64,000 bases of DNA from Guillardia theta CCMP2712 (lineage: Eukaryota; Protista; Cryptophyta), in NCBI RefSeq assembly GCF_000315625.1, contig NW_005434671.1, positions 310,001 to 374,000 on the forward strand. Direction: 5' to 3'. The translations under genes and the position numbers were made by a program. Below are positions 48,201-62,740 of the stretch, one piece after another (position 1 is the first letter of the stretch; each line of letters starts with the position of its first letter). Under the pieces are notes generated by a model that saw nothing but the letters and a program-made list of their open reading frames with translations, was not told the origin of the DNA and made no database searches.

Positions 48201-50868
48201 GCATCATCGTTCTTGTCATCACCTCCTGATACTCTTCCAGCCTTGCCAGGGCCAACCACAAGTCCACACTTAGCGGGCAGCAACCGTCCTCGACTGCCCT
48301 TGTCAACAGGACTCGTGCTGCATCCTGCGCATGGACCATCGTCAGACAGCAGCTGGAGCTGATGTTCAACTTTCCTTGTCCTCCAACTCTACAGCAGCTT
48401 TCCACAACCTCTCCGAATCTGGAATCAATTCCAACGCTCTTCGCAGAACTCTCCTCTGACGATTCCGTCATTCTGGAAGCACTATCAAATGAAGCTCCTT
48501 GCCTTTCCCTTCGCCTCTTGCTCGAGTTCGGCTGCTCGCATCCACAATGAGACCTGAAGAGTAAGCAATCAGTGTAAGGAGGTTAGTAGAGCGAGATACC
48601 TTAGTCGGCAGATGATGAACTGCTTGAGCAATGATTTTCTTTGCCTGAAGTGCGAAAGGTCAAACAAGATACATGAGCAACTTTGATGAGCAGACTTGTT
48701 CTGGAGGATGAATGCTTGCCGCTTCCAACCAGATATCTTCATTCAAGGGAACCGCCTCGCATCCCTGTGGGACTTGTCAACAACTCAATCCAGACGGCCA
48801 TAGGAGGCATTACCTGCATAATCAAGTTTCTTGCTTGAGAAACCTTTCCTGCGATGACCTGGTGGTTGCAAAGTGAGGCTAAGATCACTCGTAGGCAATT
48901 CTCTTACTTCCAATCGAGAAGCTGCGATCCAAGCTGGAGCATGCTTTGGATTGGATGTGATGGCAGACTTGAGCAGAAGCCTTGCTTGCTTGATGTCAGC
49001 TACGTCCGCAGCCTATACGAAATCAGTAAACATCGAGATTTCAAAACATGGTGAACCTGATTGCGGATCTGAGAATTGAGATCCGTCAAGTATCCCTTGG
49101 GATCAACAACAGTCTGTCCCGACACAGAGTCCGAAACTCTTCGCATGGATATCAGGAGAATATTGCTTTCAGTCAGACGTCACCTGTCCAACTTCAATTG
49201 CAGGTATGTATTACGACCCTCTCCGACTTTGTTCAAATCCGTGAACTGCGATTGTGTGCCTGCCCCATCAAACCGCCGTTATTGACTACTCCCGATAAAG
49301 TAGAAAGGTGATGAGTCAGCGTCACCTGATACTGTAGTGATCCCTCCAAGTACTTGCTGTCTTGTATCGAGTTCATTGTGGCTTCCTGCTTGCTCTGCCT
49401 GTGCTTGCGCTAGCAATGAATCAGGCGCTGGCATGAATCTGCCTCATAGTCAAGGTTTGCTGACAATGAGACCAATATCAACCTGTCCTTCATGGTATCG
49501 ACTCTCCTCTTCTTGTGTGAAATATCGTTGGCATCAGGAATGGAAACCCAGTCTTCTCTAGAAAGAGATTGCAGATCTGAAGATATATCCAGTATCAGGA
49601 CCCTTCTTCAACTTTACACCAAGGCAATATTGCAGGTTGCATCCATTCAGACATGTCTGTTGCGGTCAATTTCTCCACATCTTGTATCGCGCATGTCACC
49701 AACATCTCAAAGCTCAATTCAATCCAATCCGATCATGGATAGCATCGAAGAGCTTCAAAAGACATGGTCCCTTGCCGATACAAAATACGAATACTCAATC
49801 CCTTATCTGCTCTTGTGACATCATTCGGACAAGGGGCACAGATTCTCTTGAGAAACAGGAGAACTATCCATCGATGCTCACCTCGCTTGATGTCTGCAAA
49901 CTGGGAATGGAGGGTTGGAAGCTTTGCACGATATTTCCTGAGCTCTTCTTTTTCACGAGCTTCTCTCCTCTCCTTTCTACGTCTGAGTACGTGATGACTT
50001 AATACCAGCTCTTGTGCAGTCACAGCAAACAAACCCATCCATCCTTTGGTCCACTGCGTCCCAGACTGCATCGGCTTCTTGATCGTCCTGGCAGGCAGAT
50101 CCGTCATCCATAAGAGCATGGCACCCAGGAATTGAGATGCAAAGCACGACAACTCCCGGAAAGATGAAGTAGAGCATCGGCAAGCGAAGAGGAGGGAGCA
50201 ACGAAGGCAAGCAAGGAAAGACGAGGAGCAAGAGAAGCAATGCATGCCACAGGTGAGAGCAAACGCAGTAAACAACAACAAGAAAAATGCGCGCGAAGAG
50301 CAATCACCTGTTCGTACGGGGTGTCGCTGAAAAGAGCGCCCCCGTATCCATAGAATTCGTTGTAGTTTGAATCTCCAAGATCCTCCTCCTTCTCGCCTGC
50401 TACGTCATCCTTGCCACCGAATCCTGCAGTTCCACGACCAGCTCCAGGAACGTAGCCCTACACGATCATAAGTCTCCAGGGCCGACCAGGAGAACCCATC
50501 TCTTCACCTCAGGTGCCTGCCCGAAACTAACGACGTTTCTTTGCTGCTGGGCTGTGGCTGCCTGATCTTGCTCAGGCGCAGAGTATCGAGCAGGACCGAT
50601 ATCGGATCGGGTAGTGAAGCCGGTGGCACCACGACCAAGACCTGCACACACATCAGACAACTAGCTACCGAGAGCCCCGCTGCTGAGCAGGTGCAAACAA
50701 GCACGGGAGCTACATCGTGTGTCCTCGGGTCCTCCCTTGCTGCAATCGAAGCAGGAGGAGGGCACCGAGGCACCTCACAAGCGTCTGCTGCCTCTGCATA
50801 CCTGGCACGTAGTTCGTGGGCACTCCCGCCCTCGTCAGCGCCATGCGCTTCGCCTGCAGGGACGACAT
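45297..50868 (-). CDS. PRPF6: Pre-mRNA splicing factor Prp6 (U5-102K)
   Basis: [23 protein letters not shown]; [17 protein letters not shown]; QFADIK; [12 protein letters not shown]; HAT repeats; [18 protein letters not shown]; [20 protein letters not shown]; [13 protein letters not shown]; TGA at 45297-45299. Confidence 0.96.
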
Positions 50869-51126
50869 TCTAGCTCGCGCGCTGCTTGCAGAAGCACATC
50901 CACATCCCCGCTCATACCGATCATGAGACCGACCCCCCACGGGGGTGGAACTGCTATATTCGATCTGACAGACGGGCCAACCCCTAGTGTGGGAATTAAC
51001 TGGTACAAATATTTAGTTAAATACCCCCCCCTCCTTTCCTCATCGCGCCTCCATGCAGAGCGTTCGGGGCACTATGGCGGGGGATTTAGGGGGTGCTGCA
51101 TGCCATGGCAGGGTGTCACGAGAAAA

Positions 51127-51147
51127 TTCAAATCAAATTTTTGGCGG
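51127..51147. promoter_or_regulatory. CHR-like (TTCAAA) plus E2F-like (TTTGGCGG) motif pair in the PRPF6/transposase divergent intergenic region
   Basis: TTCAAA at 51127-51132 and TTTGGCGG at 51140-51147, about 25 bp before ATG 51171. Confidence 0.35.
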
Positions 51148-51170
51148 GCAAAGCTATGTTGTCCCACACC

Positions 51171-54100
51171 ATGGGCAGGCCGAGGCTTCCAGCGAAGAAA
51201 ATATGCTCATCATGCCACAGACGACGAGAAATGACCAGCATTCGAAAGTGGCATGGTGTGTCTATGTGCACAACTTGTGTTGCAAGGTTGAAAAAACACA
51301 AGGATTGCAATGATCTTGAGCAGATCTTGCTCTCTCAATGGGATGATGCCTTGGTTTTCAAGCTGTTGGATTTCTTGCAATGCCATGGCCATGCAACTTT
51401 ATCTGTGGAGTGTGAAGACGAGAATCTTTTAGTTTCAGCGACCCATTACCTCAAGTGGAGTCTTCGTTCTGTATCCTTGTATGAAGTCCAGAACAAACTA
51501 AAGGTCCTCGGAGATGTCTATGGGCCTACATCAGAAGGATTTTCGAGATGTTTTCTCCAGCACTACATGCAGGTTTTCGAACAACAAGCATCTGGCAAAT
51601 CACATGGAGGCACAAAGGCCATTTATGAGCACTTGAATCGACTTCGTACACGTATTGGCAACATTCACAGGAAGAATCGAAACCTTCTTTCTCGCATGGA
51701 AGAATGGTCTACTGCTCACTTCGAGAATTTGAATTCATTGCAAACTACTATACACGATTACTTTGTGAAGTAAGTCTGAGATGTTGCTTTCTTTCCATGC
51801 CAGTGACCTGACGATCATTGTACAGGTATGCAAGAATGTCGGATGAACATGTTGACACAAGTGAGAGTCTTCCAAACAAACATGCCAAGGCGCAATCCGA
51901 ACTGTTCATTCAGACAGTCCTTGAAACTTTTAGAACCCTTGACAGCCACACCCGATGTGACATGATTAGAAGGATTATGAGTGAACACGACTCTCTGTGT
52001 CAAACACATGACAAGAATACAGAGCATGAGCTATCTGCGATATGTAAATTCGAAAATGCTGTTTCAAATCTGCATGCTGCTGGATTGCCGGATATACTTT
52101 CGGAGTTAGTAATCTTTGCCAGAAACGACATCCAAGCTTTCAAAAGCACACATAGAATCATGCCTTACCTCGTCATGGATTGGTGTCATCAGAGCTTCAG
52201 AGCGAAAGATTCGAGGGGCATGAGATTCTCTCCGGAGGTTTTGAGTTTCGCATCAACAATTCTCAATGTTTGCGACGGGAGTACGTTCCGTTTACTGTCA
52301 GGGCCAGGGAACAAGTATACGAGAAACTTCCATTCTGATCAGGCTTTGCATAACTTGCCTCTACCGTCCATATCTACTCTTCATAAGCTGCAGAGTGCAG
52401 ACATGAAGACACGTGATCTAAACAAGTCAAGAATCTGCAGCGAGGTTTTGCATGATTACGGTGAAATGAATTTTAACCTTGTAGAAGGTATTCATGTGTT
52501 GGCGATGGACAAGACGATGATCAATGCTGGGTTTTGTAAACAGTTCGAAGACTGCGAAGCAGATTTAGGTGGAGTCACGGGGAAAACAATGGATTTGTGT
52601 GAACGGCTTGAGATGCGACAGAGACGGTTGGCACGGCTTTGTTTGGAGGGAACAACCGCTGAATCGATTCAGGAGCATGTGATAGGCTTATTGAAAACTG
52701 ACTTGGATCACATCAATGAAAGGAAATCAACGACTGAACGGGACTACAAGAAAATTCGTGATAAGTATGTTGCAAAAATGATTAGCAACAACGCAGATAC
52801 GAGAAGGAATGTCTCTAATGAAGTCAGGTTTACGCCACATCAATTGTACATGGCCGGGGTCATTGAGGGATGTAGTCAGATCCAAACTCAAGTGCCGCAA
52901 CTGATTGATCGTCTGAACAACTACATCAGTACCGCCACACCAAGCGAGGACGAGCGGCGTTCAATTCAAGATGAATTAAATGTATACAATGACTTGTACT
53001 ACAAGACGGCGATCGCCGAACTAGCAGAAGATGCAATATGTGTGGTTGCACAGGATGGACAAAAGCATATGCCTCCTGCGCCTGTTTACATCGGCTTTGC
53101 CCATAAAAGTTTGTGTTCCAAAGATGGAAAGGATATTTTTTTAGCTGTCACCAATGAAGCTTGGAAGAGAGGCGTGAACTTCAATGTGTGGTCTTTCGAT
53201 GGGGAGTTCGCCTGTATATATCGTTATTTCTACCAAGACAAGCCAAGTACATTCATTCAGGAAGTGAAAGCCATTAACAAGACTGCAACCAGTATGGAAT
53301 ATAGACATTTATGTACATCTATTTCAGCATACATTTCGGGGATATTCAAGTTCGAACCTCCAATTTCAGAGCACGACATTGAGAGTGAGTGCACATTGGA
53401 CCATCCAGATGAGTACGATGGTGATGATTTGTCGTCATTGCCCATCACACCTCAGCAAGGAATTGTACACATGGATGTTGCTGAGATGAGAGAAATTAAA
53501 CAGTTTGTTTTGCAGTTACGACAGAACCAGGCCATATGGCAAGTTCAGAAGGAGAAGACGCTACGATGCCACACGAGGAAGAGGCCCAGAGCGACCCTGA
53601 AAGAGATGTTTTGCAGGTTTCAAATATTTTGCAGACGGTACGGATATGAAGAAGTTCTTTCATTGGCCAAGCACAATGAAGAGGGGGGGGAAACATTCAC
53701 TCCTTGGGAGATGGAGCGAAGAATAGCTGATGGACTAAATGACTTTGATGAACACAAGATCCGCTTTAAATTCGACGAATGGTTATCCAATCCCGTCCTC
53801 TCTCCAATTACGAACAAGTTGTTGTTTTTCTCGCCGTGCATCAATCACTTGTTGAAGAATGTCAGGCATTCCATTGGATCAGGGAAGTCTCAATCGTCTT
53901 CTACGGAAGCCCAGATATGGCATAAAGCTTACAGTGATATCGCCAAGAAGAATCCTGCTTGGATGACTCAGATGGAAGTCGACGGGACCGCCGATCCACA
54001 ATCGGTGGATATCATGCTGAAGATGTTCAGTGACAAGGCCATCAGTCTACTAAAGGCAGAAGGACATGAAGCGACAGCAAGAATGGCAGAGGCTATGTCT

Positions 54101-54697
54101 GGCCTGCACAAAGCATTCGATGAAAGAGGGCTGAAAGTTTCAGAGAGGATACGTCTCGTTCAAGAGGGTCGAAGATGGCTATTGGAAGGCATCGACTGGA
54201 CCAGTGTCAGCCAAAAACATGTCAAGGGACTATCATCTGTAACATTTGAAGGCTTCATAGTTGCAATTGATACTCATCTGCAAGTACAACAGTATGTGAG
54301 GGATAAGAATCATGCGCTGGGTGATAGAGACTATGACTTCAATTCACGAACTCTCTGCACGGATAGTGTAGAGAATCTGTGGTCGTTGATCGGCCATCTG
54401 AACAAGAAGGATTTTCTGAGAAAATTCAATCAGGCATGCATAGAATTATCTAAAAAGGTGGATCCAAACCTGCCTTTTGTATACGAGCATTCGAAGAAGC
54501 GAATTGTCCTGAGCAAACCGCACGACCGTGAAGCTTTCAATGCACGGGATGGATCTGATAATGATGTGGAGCCACACAATAGTACGCAGAAGAACAATCG
54601 AAAGCGAGTATATGCTAAATCAGGGCAATGGGATGAAGGATTAACAGGTAATATGCAACGGTTCCGGGGATTGCGTAGCATTGCTGGCTGCAAGTAG
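51171..54697 (+). CDS. P-element-superfamily-like DDE transposase or transposase-derived protein, two exons (51171-51769, 51826-54697), 1156 aa from ATG 51171
   Basis: Intron 51770-51825 (GTAAGT, CTGAC branch point, TACAG) joins ORFs 51093..51773 and 51818..54697 in frame. Motifs in P/THAP9 order: RGMRFSPEVLSFASTI, LPLPSISTL, VLAMD (D1), WSFDG (D2), CINHLLKNVR (C/DxxH), DPQSVDIMLKMFS, RTLCTDSVENLWSLI (E). N-terminal CSSC-x14-CTTC. Confidence 0.8.
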
Positions 54698-54974
54698 AAA
54701 AAAGTACGTATTGTGGAAAATATTAAACACTGCTACGATGCAATTCAAATGATTGATACCATGATATAGATTTTACAATTTCCTGATAGGCTATGGTGGT
54801 TTCACGATTGTCATCATTGCACAGGCTGAATTAATCATCCTTAAACCTGGTCGCCGCCTTGCTGCCATTGCGATTTCCTGCAAACTCACCCACCCCCTCC
54901 TGAAAAGGTACCCCCAAAATATCATACAAAAATACCGGTACTAGACCATTTTATTGGGAGTTCCTCCCCCGTGC

Positions 54975-55020
54975 CGACCCCCCAGCCGACCCCCAGCCGA
55001 CCCCCCTCAGCGACCCCCGG
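54975..55020. repeat. Short tandem repeat (CAGCCGACCCCC) about 4 copies
   Basis: gccgaccccccagccgacccccagccgacccccctcagcgaccccc. Confidence 0.8.
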
Positions 55021-55210
55021 CCCGCCGGGCCGCGGCAGGACTCCCGGGACCCCGGGCCCTCAGCCCTGGACCGTACAACCTTGAACGGTCACCTCGGACC
55101 GGCGGACCGCTGGACCGATCGGCCGCGTAGTCAGACTCGCCAGGCCGGCCAACCCGCCGTGGGTGCCTATCATACTAGGATAGTATCAGTGCCACCGTGT
55201 GCCGGCAGAG

Positions 55211-55487
55211 CTGGCTAATTGACAGTGATGATCATCGGATGTTTGTGTGCCAATTGTGCCGGTAAATTACTGGCTAATTGATAGCCGATTTCAGGTTTGA
55301 TGATGTTTGTGTTAATTGCTGGCTAATTGATAGCCGATTTCAGGTTTGATGATGTTTGTGTGCCAATTGTGCCGGTAAATTACTGGCTAATTGATAGCCG
55401 ATTTCAGGCCTGATGATGTTTGTGTGCCAATTGTGCCGCCGCCGGGTAAATTACTGGCTAATTGATAGCCGATTTCAGGTTTGTGCC
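55211..55487. repeat. Five-unit variable-length tandem array with conserved core CTGGCTAATTGATAGCCGATTTCAGG
   Basis: Cores start at 55211 (degenerate), 55270, 55319, 55383 and 55454, giving periods of 59, 49, 64 and 71 bp. Confidence 0.9.
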
Positions 55488-57424
55488 GCTTCCGTCGGAC
55501 TCCCGGGAGCCGCGCGCCCGGCCCGCCGCGGCCGGAGGCCCGGCGCCGGGCCACTGATCATTGCTCAGTGCGGCTGCCCGGTACTAGGCTAGCTGGCAGT
55601 TAGTACTGCTCGTACTGATTTTTAACTTAACTTTGAGTAAACTTGGGAAGCAGTTAGTACTACAATGATGATGCCGTGCCCGAACCGTGCCGTGCATCGA
55701 ACGGTGTGCCGCGCCGTGCGGCCCGGCGGCCGGGCCGCACTCAGGCTGCACAGTGGCGTGCCCCCGGCGGCCCGCATCTCAGTCCTGAATTTGAAAGTAC
55801 CGTGACCGCCGCTGAGACTCTCAGTACTAGTATTTGAAATTGGAACTGGGAAATTGGTTAGGTTCTGTTTCAACAGTCGGAAGGCAAAACGTTATAGAAG
55901 CCAGGAAATACGAAGGCACAACAATGCGAAACGCTTACAGTTTGCTTGGAGCACATGTATGTGGGCCCGTACAACACACCCGTAACCAAGTACAGTAGTG
56001 TTAGTACCATTTTTGATAAATAGTATTATAGTTTTCGTACTTCCCCGAACAGTAGTAGCGCTTAAACCCTTTCCCTATTGTTCTATTTCTGGTACCAGTA
56101 GTCTATCTAGCTGTACCGTGCTAGGGCGGGTCAACTCGAGGGTCCCACAACAATGCGAAACGATGCTTGTTCCTTTGTGTTAAGAGGGATGAGGGGTAGT
56201 AGGTTCCAGGGTAAGGTGGGAGGTAGGGTGGTGTGAAGGAAAGGAGGGGATGAGGGACACGCGAGCACATGAACTGGCCAGGAACAGAAATGAACGGCAA
56301 CAATCTGAAACGACGTGGATTGCCTTGCAAAAGTGTTTTGCCCCGCAACAATACCAATCGACGCAATTCCTGAAGATTTGAGGAGATGCGGGCACACAGA
56401 AGATGTAGAAGGCGGGCCCGGGAAGGATCCATGGAAGAAAGTACGGTTGACTGTCACTTTGTATTGAATTTGTTGAATTAACTTAATTATCTATACTAAA
56501 TTTGTAAGTTGTATTGTATCTTGATACTAGTAAAATTATTATTAAAGAAACAGTAGGAAAAAACTAACTGTGAAATAAAGTCAACATGATTGCTCCTGGT
56601 ACCGGACGGTTACATCGGCAAAGGTGCATGATGAGGTAGGGGTGGTCACCTCATAGTCAATGGTGGGTACCTTTGTGGGATATGATGGGGTAGATGATCG
56701 AAAATCTGGTCTAAAAAGTAACTATCGAGGGTGGGGTGCATCGGTTACGATCGGTACGGACGGATGTGGGTGGGGTGGGGGAATACGTTCAGAGGAAGGT
56801 GGTGGTACAAATATTGTGGGGTGGGTCCCTAAGAAGTAGATTCCCCCAAGGGGTGCGGATTGAGGACTTATTAATCGTGGGGTACCTTTATAGGAAAAGT
56901 AGGGGTCTGTGCGGGTACATTCGATGAACACAGGGGTGTATCCGGAACGGGGTATACACATGGTGGGTAAAGGCCCATGGGGGTCGGTCAAATGGAGGCG
57001 CAATGGATTTTCTACCAGTACCGGTTATATCCCTCCCGAAAATGACCATCCGAAGGGGGTATGTGGTATGAGCAAGGGAACCTCGGGCACCGGGGTAGTT
57101 GGTACCTGTAAGTTAGTTTCGGGAAGGTGGGGTGGGGTACTGTGGTAGGGTGGGGTCGGTGGTGTCGGTAGTACATTCCAAGAAGAGGGAAACTCACATG
57201 GCGGCGAGTATGAGAGCGAAGAGGAAGCAGTGAGAGAGGTTGGGGCCTCTCACCTTCACAACAGACCCTCGTCCTTCTCTGGTCTCGCCTTAGCTACAGT
57301 GCAGCTGCTCGACAGCAGCTCTTTGGCTGGTGGGGTTGTTCGACGGATCCTGGGAACCTGGGGCAATCCACTCCCAGCAAACTGCTCTGACCTTTCCCTT
57401 TCTTGGACGCAGGAAGGTGGTAGC

Positions 57425-59701
57425 ATGAACGAATCTATATCATCTCGTGCACCATTCGAATGCGTCTGTGGCTTCACGGCTGGGACAAGCTTTGCATGGG
57501 AGAAGCACCTGGCTCTCAGAAATACCCCGTATTCAGCTGTCAAACACACCCGTGTTATCCGAGGCGGCCAGGAAAGTGCGAAGAAGCTGTCAAACTCCAC
57601 GGAGTCACCTCATAAATCTCTGAATGGTTCCCACGACGATGGCCATATTCTAGGTGGTTACCCCACGCCGAAAGGTTGTGATTGTATGCTGTGTTTGAAG
57701 CCGACATCAGTTATACCAGTGATCACGACCGTTCATTTCCTGTATGCTAGAGACGAATAAGCTTATGTTGATCTATGTTGATCGGTATAGTCCCATGAGT
57801 GAACGAAGCTGCTTGTGTTCGCAAAGGGATAATGAATGCGGATGTTGCGGGCCGCTGAACACCAGCTGACAATCTGATGATGTTGATGTGTTAGATGAGG
57901 TCTTTGCATCTACTGACATGTTCCTCACCCTTAGCGCTCTTTCGGGATCGCAGCAACCATTCTTTGGAGACGCCGACAAGGACTCAAGTCTCATCTCCCA
58001 AGAGTCCGATACTAAACGGGCTCCACCTGGACGAAGCGGCTTCGAGCGGTGACATGGACAGAGTTGCGAGGTTGGCGGTAGAAATTCTCCGCCTTGCGCA
58101 ACAAGGGGACAGTCACGGGGTCCTGGATCTTATCACTGATAAGAGGAAGAGTGACGTTGAGAAGAACCATCATTCGTCTCATCACGCGAAATCGAAGGAC
58201 ATCCGTTTCTCTGCCAACATCACAGCCGTGCACCACGATGTGCATGGTGTGACCCTCGAGCAGGTGATGCCGTCGGTGCTTGAAGTTGGCTCAACTGACA
58301 TGGAGGCAGGTTGCCACGGGGTTGAAGAACTCGAGGAATACAGAGAGCATGGGATCCAAGGATGCCCTGCGTCTTCTTGCAATCACGGAGCCTTTGTTGG
58401 AAGCGTCCTCTACGTCGAGCACTCCCGCGCAGTTTGGCGTTGACGTTGGTGTGCTGAAGCGGACCATCATAGCCGTCGCTCAGTGTGCCTCGAGGTTTGC
58501 TGCATGTTTGCCTTGATAGGGAGCCTGCGCTGAGACTGAAGTTCACAGGATCACTGCTGGGGAACCGCGGATCTTGGAAACCCGCTCTCCGGTCTATGTC
58601 CTCGGAGACGTGCATGGTAACTTGAACGATCTGGAGTTCTTCAGGAAGTCCTTCTGGCCACTGGGACCGGAAGTGACGGCAGGAGACTTCTTGTTCCTCG
58701 GAGACTTCGTGGACCGCGGCAGAGACTCGATTGCAGTTGTGTCCTACATAATGAGCATGAAGGTCCTGCATCCCAACAAGTGGTGGATGATCCGGGGGAA
58801 CCACGAGACGCGCGAGGTCAATGGCAACATGGAGCACTACATGGAGGGGAGCTTCCTTTCGCAATGCATCGCCCTCTTTGGAGACACGGACGGGTACGCA
58901 GTCTGGGAAGCAGTGAACAACTTCTTCGACACCCTCCCGCTGGCTGCGACCATCGATGGTAAGTCCCTCACCTCGGAGCGTACCCGGGGCCCCTTGTGGT
59001 GACTTTTGCTCTTGCTAGATACCATCTTCTGTGTCCATGGAGGGATCCCACGAGAGCTCTGCCGGAGAGGCTCCAGCCTCGACCTCATCCGCAACGTCGA
59101 GTGTCCTCTCCGATCCGTGCAGACCAACGAGGTTGTCTACGAGATGCTGTGGTCTGATCCGTCCTTGCCCGAGCAGGAGCAGAACGACGAGCTGGACGAC
59201 TCGGGCTTTGGAGTCAGCGCCAGGGGCTGCACCTGCTTCGGGGAAAAGTCGATCGACCTCTTCCTCGACATCCACCGGTTCAAGCACGTCTTCCGGGGCC
59301 ACGAGGCGCAGCAGTCTGGGGTAGGAGTGAGCAAGAGCGCCCGGCTTACCACCATCTTTTCCACCTCCAAGGATCACTTCTCCGCTGACGTGACGGCGAC
59401 CTGCGGCTGTGTGCTGGTGGATCACGACACCATCCACCCTATCGTCCGAGCCCTTCCCACCGCCGGCCTCAAGCCCACGTATGCGGGGCAGTCGGTGGAG
59501 GCACAGGAGGCTCAGTTCGCGCACGTGGAGCCGTCGCATCGGGGACATGGCTCGCACAGCATCGCCTCCCTGTCGCTGAGGGATGCGGACTCGTCGAGGG
59601 GATGGAGCTACCAAGGGGAGCAGAAGTACAAGAGAGCTTGGGAGACGACCAGCATCTCCTCGAGCCCGAATCGTTACGCGCTGAGAGCGGGGAGCCCTTG
59701 A
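57425..59701 (+). CDS. Ser/Thr phosphoprotein phosphatase (PPP family) with long N-terminal extension
   Basis: GDVHG, GDFVDRG, RGNHE, CVHGGI, LWSDP, RGHE and TIFS motifs across exons 58550-58960 and 59019-59701. The start is inferred. Confidence 0.9.
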
Positions 59702-60564: not shown

Positions 60565-62740
60565 TTGAAAGGGGAGCATGAGCTTGCAGCAGATCCTTCG
60601 CGAGCGAGACCTGGCAGGGAGAGTCTGGCCGGCAGATCGAGTCGTGATGGGCTCACGGGTAACCCTCGTGCTCCTGCTCCTCCTCGTGCTCCTGCTCCTC
60701 CTGCTCCTCCTCTGCTCCTGCTCCTCCTCCTCCTGCTCCTGCTGCTCGTTGACATTTCTCCTCCTCAACAGACTTGCAAGGCCCTCAGCAAGTTCTTCGC
60801 AGACGAGTGCTGGAGCAACATGCTGGTCTCCCTGCGAGCCAAGAAGAACGCGACGAGAGGAGCGCTCATGACAATGACCTTCCTTCCCTTCCGTTCCCTC
60901 GGCATCGCCGTCTCCTTCACGCGTCTCGCGAATTCCAAGTGGTTGCACCCATTCCAGGCTGCGGTGAAAGCGGCATCGAGCAAGGGGTGGAAGGGGGTGG
61001 TGGAGGTGCATGCTGACTTCACGGGCCTGGAGGACAGGCCGATGTCGGTCCTCACCGCCGTCCTCTCCTCCTTCCCCTGCTCTCTCACTGTGCTCAACCT
61101 CAGCTGGAACCAAATCTCCGACGGCGGGCTGCAGGAGCTCGACCACGTGCTGGCGTGCAACTCCAGCCTGCAGCAGCTGCAGCTGGGAGGATGCGGGCTG
61201 GGAGCTGAGGGAGTCAAGGGCCTTGCAGGCATCCTGAGGAGCGCGAGCTCCCTTGCGCATGTAGACCTGCACCACAACCTCATCGGGCCGAGCAGCATCA
61301 GGGTCATCGGGGAGGCGCTGGCGAGCAGAAGCATGCTGCTGTCGCTGGATGTGAGCGAGAACATGATTGGGTCCTGGGGGGTCGGCGACCTTTTCTCTTT
61401 TCTCCCTTGCTCCGTGACAAGGCTCAACCTGTGGAACAACCGGATCCATGCCGAGGGTTGCCGGAGGCTGGCCGGGGCCCTCCCGCGCCTGGAGAGCCTG
61501 CAGTCCCTGACACTGAGGAGTAACGACATCAAGGACGCGGGTTGCAGCCTGGTGGTGAGCAGCCTGTCGAGGGGGATCAGGCACCTTGACCTGCGGGAGA
61601 ACATGATCACGGAGGAGGGAGCCAAGGCCATCGCAGAGAACCTGCCGAGCATGCGGAAGCTTTCCTGCCTGATGCTCGACACCAACCTCATCGGCGATGA
61701 CGGGGCCAAGCACCTGGTCCTGTCCCTGCCCTCCTGTTACAGTAAGTCCCTCATCCTCAGGATCACACAGCAGCATCTTTCATGTGCTGTGCTGTGCTGT
61801 GCTGTGCTGTGCTGTGCTGTGCTGTGCTGTGCTGTGCTGTGCTGTGCTGTGCTGTGCTGTGCTGTGCTGTGCTGTGCTGTGCTGTGCTGTGCTGTGCTGT
61901 GCTGTGCTGTGCTGTGCCGCACTTCCCTGCCTGCGTCTTCCTCTTCTCTGTCTCAGCGGCTGTCTACGTTCACCTCGATGGTTCCCACGTCCCATCGCAC
62001 TCATCAACTTCTCTGGTTAATAGTCTTGACACATCACCACAGACCTCACAGACTTTCACTTCAGCAACAACGGGATCAGCAACCACCTCCACCGGATGCT
62101 CAAGGTCTCCATACAGGACAAGTGCAAGCTGCACGTCTGGGAGTTTGAGGAGCTCTTTGGTTTCAAGCACTCCTCCAACAACAACTTGCAGGACATCGTC
62201 ATCTGATGTTCCTGATGTTGAAGCTGTACGATAATCTCCGTCCCCCTTGCCCCCTCCCTATCCTCCCCCCCGGCCCCCTTGCCCCCCAGCCCCCTTGCCT
62301 CTCCCCCCCCCTTCCCGGCCCCTCCCTCCCTCCTCCTCCTCCTCCTCCTCCTCCTCCTCCTCCTCCTCCTCCTCCTTGCTGCTCCCTCTCCATTTCTCCT
62401 CTCTCATCTCCTGTCCTCCCCTACCTCCTCCTCCCCTTTCATTCCTACCTTCCTCCACTTCAACTTCCTCCTCGTGTTCATCCTCCCTCTACAAGCTCAC
62501 ATGCAGCGGCAGGCAGCGAAGCTGGAGCAGGAGACAACAATCAACGAAGAATTCCGTCTGGTCCTCACGAAGAGTAGCAGACTTGCGCGCGTCTCCTTCC
62601 TGTCCCGCCCTTCTCCCCACGAGGAGCTCGAGATCGGGCACGTCCTCCTCGACCTCTCAGACCTTGTGGTCCAAACCTCCGGCTCCCGTCAGGGCTGGTT
62701 CCATGTTAACAGAGGGCAGGCAAGACAGGGCGAGCCGGGG
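60565..62740 (+). CDS. Ribonuclease-inhibitor-type leucine-rich repeat protein; termini uncertain because of gaps
   Basis: About 28-aa LRRs: LTVLNLSWNQISDGGL, LQQLQLGGCGLGAEGV, LAHVDLHHNLIG, LQSLTLRSNDIKDAG, IRHLDLRENMITEEGA, LSCLMLDTNLIGDDGA. Confidence 0.8.
61785..61917. repeat. (GCTGT)n pentanucleotide microsatellite, probably intronic
   Basis: About 26 perfect units after a GTAAGT donor at ~61742. Confidence 0.95.

Follow-up and report, generated by a model that had tools for sequence, protein, structure and literature searches.

The window analysed here is a stretch of 64,000 nucleotides from the nuclear assembly of the cryptophyte alga Guillardia theta CCMP2712 (87 Mb), corresponding to contig C3:310001-374000. 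A sequence-only reading had singled out in it an atypical gene for a P-element-like transposase at 51171-54697, and had considered either a divergent P-like lineage or a domesticated host gene. We found that this gene occupies the interior of a 4036-bp unit, which is very probably an intact, autonomous class II transposon (window 50938-54973) encoding an Asp-Asp-Glu (DDE) transposase of the P-element structural type.

Gene structure, ends and target duplication

The element, its terminal inverted repeats (TIRs), the flanking target-site duplication (TSD) and the exons are located in the window as follows.

50929..50937, plus strand: left TSD, 9 bp, CCGACCCCC; the identical 9-mer lies directly outside both TIRs
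50938..54973, plus strand: whole element, autonomous copy of subfamily A, 4036 bp, delimited by the limits of similarity to other copies
50938..50952, plus strand: 5' TIR, 15 nt, CACGGGGGTGGAACT, found by inverted-repeat search
51171..51769, plus strand: exon 1, 199 codons and 2 nt, with a C4 finger, a helical region and long C-terminal helices
51770..51825, plus strand: intron, 56 nt, GT..AG, phase 2, GTAAGT...TTGTACAG, frame preserved
51826..54697, plus strand: exon 2 with the stop, comprising a helical N-terminal domain, a split RNase H-like core, an insertion domain and a disordered basic tail
54959..54973, plus strand: 3' TIR, 15 nt, AGTTCCTCCCCCGTG, the complement of the 5' arm
54974..54982, plus strand: right TSD, 9 bp, CCGACCCCC, abutting the 3' TIR

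Two open reading frames (ORFs) can be read from the sequence on the plus strand (51093-51773 and 51818-54697), and the ORF of 959 amino acids on the exon 2 side is 99% identical to GUITHDRAFT_113559. The single intron fuses them into a frame of 1156 amino acids (ATG at 51171, stop at 54697), just as the sequence-only reading had proposed, and the Met at 51171 is the first one that is invariant across the three subfamilies A, B and C described below. The subfamilies share a homologous intron in position and phase, with lengths of 56 nt in A, 53 nt in B and 48 nt in C. The searches and structure models were run exon by exon.

The two TIR arms are complementary at 14 of 15 positions, the 5' arm at a distance of 233 bp from the start codon and the 3' arm at 262 bp from the stop. 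When the genome was searched with the DNA of window 48500-57500, the similarity of the genomic copies began sharply at 50936-50938 and ended at 54973-54975, and the TIR pair coincides exactly with these limits. The alignment of copies and flanks recommended earlier therefore places the ends at 50938 and 54973, with a duplication of 9 bp. The earlier view that no TIR exists within 300 bp upstream or 2.5 kb downstream, and that the ends might be unusual, has to be abandoned because the 15-nt TIRs and the 9-bp TSD lie within that very stretch, and the TIRs are ordinary and short. The G+C content is 0.44 within the element and about 0.57 over much of the remaining window, with flanking bins at 0.48-0.51.

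The same type of duplication recurs at other sites in the genome. TSDs of 9 bp with differing sequences surround nine copies including that of the window (the others being L026, L029, L030, L031 and L035-L038). The exceptions are one older copy with 8 bp, one in which 8 of the 9 positions agree, and one ambiguous case with a mutated TIR (L021). Allowing at most one mismatch, the genome contains 51 occurrences of the TIR 15-mer, compared with eight of the reversed control; the identical 15-mer ends subfamilies A and C, and that of B differs by one nucleotide. In the full-length subfamily B copy L021 (G000:C86:144056-148091), the 5' TIR is mutated (CATGG...), and the flanks match over 7 bp rather than 9. 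The nine clear TSDs are rich in G+C (57 of 81 bases), and their composition hints at a preference for G+C-rich targets. In the window, the element is inserted at the margin of a short array of tandem CCGACCCCC(AG)-like units (54974-55020).

Genomic copies, subfamilies and selection

The search for further copies that had been suggested from the sequence returned at least 57 matches to the exon 2 protein, 80 matches at the DNA level, and the 51 termini mentioned above. Over 1.4-1.9 kb, the copies on contigs C67, C19 and C11 match the window copy at 100% identity; the copies on C18, C68 and C7 reach 99%. Many copies fuse the 5' part directly to the 3' part, as on C11, C19, C7, C64 and C106; judging from this structure, they are internally deleted, non-autonomous derivatives. 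Such derivatives are typical of cut-and-paste elements, for instance P and Ac/Ds. Apart from the window copy, no complete member of subfamily A is among the matches listed.

Subfamily B is represented on C86 by a unit of 4036 bp with 81% protein identity to A, and subfamily C by four identical copies of 3972 bp on C24, C36, C42 and C80 with 53% protein identity to A. A, B and C are all present at full length with the two-exon structure, and all have the 9-bp TSD, which is ambiguous in the single B copy. More distant subfamilies, mostly deleted, are also found in the genome. By the identity of its copies the family appears to have been active very recently. The four copies of subfamily C (L035-L038 at G000:C24, C36, C42 and C80) have equal protein scores and a separate 9-bp TSD each, and likewise point to a very recent burst.

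Between subfamilies A and B, the ratio of nonsynonymous to synonymous substitution rates (dN/dS) amounts to 0.16 in exon 2 and 0.42 in exon 1; the comparison of A with C is saturated at synonymous sites. As estimated from these alignments, the transposase gene has been under purifying selection. A protein derived from an MMETSP transcript (P0002) matches subfamily A at 98%. We also identified a fourth paralog family in Guillardia, 33% identical (P0142/P0143; GUITHDRAFT_113240 on a 477-kb contig), of which P0143 comes from an MMETSP transcript. The N-terminus of P0142 has its own CxxC...CxxC motif, and its exon-1-like and exon-2-like parts are found in one protein.

Fold, catalytic motifs and distant relatives

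The following protein features were assigned to the two exons, with residue numbers of D231, D461, C674/H677 and E852 in exon 2 numbering. Model confidence is given as the predicted local distance difference test (pLDDT), and the 44 relatives are the long distant ones described further below.

51204..51278, plus strand: CxxC-x17-CxxC zinc-finger-like motif, the four Cys invariant in A, B and C
52508..52510, plus strand: candidate catalytic D1, D231 in LAMDKTM, invariant in the subfamilies; local pLDDT low
52595..53050, plus strand: predicted three-helix bundle between D1 and D2, residues ~260-411 (helices 260-273, 281-324, 340-371 and 377-411; pLDDT ~80)
53198..53200, plus strand: candidate catalytic D2, D461 in WSFDGEF, at least 90% conserved in the 44 relatives
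53837..53848, plus strand: C/DxxH signature CINH, C674-H677, which opens the insertion domain; H677 invariant in the 44 relatives
54371..54373, plus strand: candidate catalytic E, E852 in TDSVENLWS, at least 90% conserved in the 44 relatives; model helix 849-860

The structure of exon 2 was modelled by AlphaFold2 on 136 aligned sequences. The pLDDT is mostly above 85 for residues 660-890 (about 60-72 around 840 and at 860-890) and mostly about 80 for 270-400. Foldseek placed P transposase first (E 8e-3, probability 1.00), followed by RAG1, and the P transposase structure 6p5a came out on top both in Foldseek's list and among 48,161 representative chains. VIA-align superimposed model residues 222-875 on residues 220-564 of P transposase with a Z-score of 20.5 and a root-mean-square deviation of 4.5 Å for 281 residues. 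This part of P transposase includes D230, D303, the insertion domain and E531, so that the match covers the D/D/E region for which the sequence-only reading had demanded an RNase H-like fold, with the caveat that the D1 strand is poorly modelled. The next rows after 6p5a were generic helical bundles with Z-scores of about 10 on residues 260-410; RAG1 reached a Z-score of 7.7, and the Hermes transposase was outside the top 50 rows. The bundle between D1 and D2 by itself resembles only generic helical bundles (Z 8-10).

A homologous relationship with P transposase is also indicated by two approaches other than superposition. The nearest ESM-Atlas clusters, by shape and by language-model features, carry PF21787, PF21788, PF21789, THAP and PF12017. 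The profile of the 44 relatives matched the sequence of 6p5a at E 1.2e-4 over DTPH (D339-H342), KQKVKLATQLFS (398-409) and NDWFD (440-444), spanning the motifs DxxH ... QxV..A..FS ... W(F/Y). Fold, profile and Atlas neighbours together bear out the earlier suggestion of a divergent P-like transposase without a THAP domain. Other searches added little: a word-based protein search returned Guillardia proteins only, a search of the whole Guillardia genome with PF21787 gave no match and was uninformative because the controls were silent too, and Rfam had no match over window 48-58 kb.

The candidate catalytic residues noticed from the sequence are all present and conserved. AMD, FDG, CINH and SVE are invariant across A, B and C, which are only 53-81% identical, and D461, G462, H677, R683 and E852 are at least 90% conserved in the 44 long distant relatives. 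D1 was found in eight of the eight distant relatives whose match covers the site. D2 reads FDG(Q/E) in essentially all relatives covering it, and it lies within the PF21787 match in relatives. The signature in relatives is C/DxxH..N.R, in a region that aligns with DTPH (D339-H342) of P transposase, and the context of E is N.R....D..E..FS. The spacing from D1 to D2 is 230 amino acids, close to the previous estimate of about 240 with a helical insert, now predicted to be the three-helix bundle; from D2 to CxxH it is 213 amino acids, where about 210 had been estimated.

In exon 1, the proposal of a C4 finger instead of a THAP domain at the N-terminus stands in substance, with a spacing of x17 in place of the x14 first given, and x17-19 across the subfamilies. 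No match to the THAP family PF05485 was found at E up to 1 in the three subfamilies, and the exon 1 model gave no THAP match. In this model (pLDDT 73) the finger consists of short strands with a helix, and residues 148-198 form long helices; compared with the PDB, the model had no match below E 0.7, and LIM-type fingers overlapped over 28-31 residues only. As far as the model tells, the DNA-binding domain is a C4 finger of no finer class, and not a THAP domain.

An exhaustive profile search of a library of 1.8 billion proteins (E up to 1e-3) found 133 representative proteins with the Guillardia profile, 27 of them at 1e-10 or better. The nearest relatives outside Guillardia (E 1e-28 to 1e-9) comprise marine-metagenome proteins, which are the closest, and unannotated eukaryotic proteins that combine a YqaJ nuclease with a weak TNP-like RNase H match, for example those of the snail Batillaria (KAK7507914) and the annelid Owenia (CAH1782775). 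The long relatives are collinear with the Guillardia proteins over three blocks, namely the N-terminal helical block up to D1, the D2 block, and the block from CxxH to E. Pfam assigned a YqaJ nuclease to 16 of the 44 long relatives, PF21787 to five, and helix-hairpin-helix (HhH) to four, and no MULE, hAT or other transposase family except PF21787 was found in them. PF21787 is the P-derived TNP-like RNase H N-terminal domain. The Guillardia proteins have no detected YqaJ or HhH and possess the three-helix insert instead. The HhH relatives from marine metagenomes are P0011, P0015, P0018 and P0020. In animal relatives (P0017, P0028, P0038, P0044 and P0046), the YqaJ or lambda-exonuclease-like domain is located upstream of the RNase H part, and in P0017 it follows the N-terminal helical block and precedes the RNase H part.

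The nearest relative outside Guillardia is encoded on a marine-metagenome contig (L046:445-5725) by two ORFs of 560 and 728 amino acids, in which an HhH motif was recognised. Around these ORFs there is a CAC...GTG inverted repeat of 20 nt without a visible target duplication. About 18 nt farther out follows another inverted repeat, TTTGGCGGG, so the ends are ambiguous.

Alternative identities, relation to P elements and implications

On the minus strand, an ORF at 49733-50278 contains the N-terminal domain of PRP1/PRP6 (PF06424, E 2.5e-5). The element lies about 650 bp from this ORF, head to head, so that the transposon is situated in or near the upstream region of the PRP1/PRP6-domain gene. 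Further away on the plus strand are a fragment of a calcineurin-like phosphoesterase (PF00149) in the ORF 59006-59698 and leucine-rich repeats (LRR_6, E 3e-22) in the ORF 60565-62145.

The locus could be read in other ways. The two ORFs might be separate genes or remnants of a decayed gene, the supposed intron being a chance GT..AG pair. The MMETSP protein P0002 indeed begins just within exon 2, and the junction is known here from genomic DNA alone. Yet the junction, its phase and its short length (48-56 nt) are common to three subfamilies saturated at synonymous sites, and in the paralog P0142 and the transcript-derived P0143 a single protein joins the exon-1-like part directly to the exon-2-like part, which makes this reading very improbable. 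Still less probable, in our view to an extreme degree, is the domestication of a single-copy P-derived gene beside the PRP6-like gene, in the manner of THAP9. A long intact ORF, a conserved intron, a dN/dS below 1 and the existence of transcripts would all suit a host gene. However, the gene sits inside a unit of 4036 bp with TIRs and a TSD, this unit is repeated on dozens of contigs with up to 100% identity and many internal deletions, and the subfamilies between which purifying selection was measured are themselves mobile, each with TIRs and TSDs of its own. The many near-identical copies with TIRs and TSDs are what the sequence-only reading itself had named as decisive against domestication, and copy number, ends and deletion derivatives together rule it out.

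It is also improbable, if less so, that the element belongs to another superfamily with a C/DxxH signature (MuDR/Mutator, Kolobok, Dada or hAT) and that the match to P merely reflects missing solved structures. MuDR/Mutator makes duplications of 9-10 bp, typically 9, and one Kolobok lineage bears a lambda-exonuclease-like nuclease (PMC9587614), comparable to the YqaJ domain in 16 of the 44 distant relatives. On the other hand, none of these 44 matches MULE, hAT or other transposase families of Pfam, whereas five match the P-derived PF21787, and all named Atlas neighbours are TNP-like or THAP9. The hAT superfamily is rejected since the Hermes structure is solved and yet gave no match within the top 50 rows; RAG1 likewise stayed far below P (Z 7.7 versus 20.5). 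Kolobok elements are defined by a TTAA duplication, RR...YY termini, and, in nearly all of them, a zinc finger between C/DxxH and E (PMC9587614). The Guillardia duplications are not TTAA, the termini are CAC/GTG and not RR/YY, and residues 678-851 between CxxH and E contain one Cys and no zinc finger. Moreover, YqaJ in the relatives stands upstream of the RNase H part, whereas the nuclease of KolobokE is downstream of the transposase. Kolobok is rejected on duplication, termini and zinc finger alike. MuDR/Mutator has a DDE core, the C/DxxH signature and the 9-bp duplication in common with the element, but neither the element nor its relatives yielded a MULE, SWIM or WRKY-type domain, and the TIRs measure 15 nt as opposed to the long Mu type. 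Beyond the 9-bp duplication, MuDR does not appear to fit the properties tested, and the fold and profile evidence point to P.

The assignment to the P type agrees with what is known of the P superfamily (Drosophila P, zebrafish Pdre and human THAP9) in overall architecture. Both have a split RNase H-like core in which a large alpha-helical insertion domain is located between the last strand and the E-bearing helix. They share D, D and E with DxxH, the insertion-domain motifs Q-x-V...A...FS and W-(F/Y), and D-x-x-E. Further common features are splicing of the transposase gene, non-autonomous copies with internal deletions, and short TIRs, those of P being 13 nt in zebrafish and 31 nt in Drosophila (PMC7776569). 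The spacing from D1 to D2 differs, with 230 amino acids in Guillardia, where a three-helix bundle of about 150 amino acids is inserted, against 73 in P. So do the escape from the TNP-like models of Pfam and the host, a cryptophyte alga, and the duplication, which in the P superfamily measures 8 bp (7-8).

Several observations weigh against this assignment. Pfam searches with both exons of the three subfamilies gave no family reaching E 0.01, and the Guillardia-only profile found no match among PDB sequences; because of these two results, the sequence link to P appears to be only transitive, via the relatives. The exon 2 model is mediocre, with a mean pLDDT of 64.7 and values below 50 in the D1 region (148-261). 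For Kolobok, MuDR and Dada no structure has been solved, so the comparison of folds could not have placed them relative to P. The TSD is 9 bp in Guillardia but 8 bp in P elements of Drosophila and zebrafish (PMC7776569), and the C4 finger with x17 spacing stands in place of the C2CH THAP finger of P. The GTP-contact residues of P (PMC7776569), mapped via the profile alignment to Guillardia, are retained at V401 (V730), S409 (S738) and probably D528 (D849, from the D-x-x-E motif), but K400, F443 and D444 are replaced by S729, H764 and K765, K385 falls in a P-specific insert, and N447 probably corresponds to D768 by extrapolation. As aligned, most of the GTP-contact residues of P are not conserved here.

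For this transposase, the following course of events is proposed. The N-terminal C4 finger and the helical or coiled region would recognise the ends and mediate dimerisation. The predicted layout continues with a helical domain and the RNase H-like core with D231, D461 and E852, which would be split by the large alpha-helical insertion domain opening with C/DxxH. The transposase would bind the 15-nt CAC...GTG TIRs and excise the element, and the 3' ends would be joined to the target DNA with a stagger of 9 bp. Repair of this stagger would produce the 9-bp duplication.

A wider grouping may be considered, to which we give only limited credence. The Guillardia elements, the YqaJ proteins of molluscs and annelids and the HhH proteins of marine protists could form a deep, undescribed sister lineage of P with the rank of a superfamily or major clade. 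Its hallmarks, which we regard as equally tentative, would be a 9-bp TSD, a non-THAP DNA-binding domain, accessory domains placed within the RNase H core or before it, and the loss of GTP use by the insertion domain. Within the literature covered, our search found no description of a P-like element or an element with a 9-bp TSD in Guillardia, nor of a combination of YqaJ with P.

In summary, a cryptophyte alga would be added to the hosts of P-type transposases, with an enzyme that standard domain models miss. Because these models miss it, annotations of protists and some animals probably overlook a whole branch, comprising 133 clusters, most of whose 44 long members carry no transposase family of Pfam. 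The element is young, intact and simple (4 kb, one gene and 15-nt ends), which recommends it as a realistic candidate for transposition assays and for insertional mutagenesis in an alga with few genetic tools. Its divergent insertion domain might also serve as a natural test of GTP dependence across transposases with the P fold.

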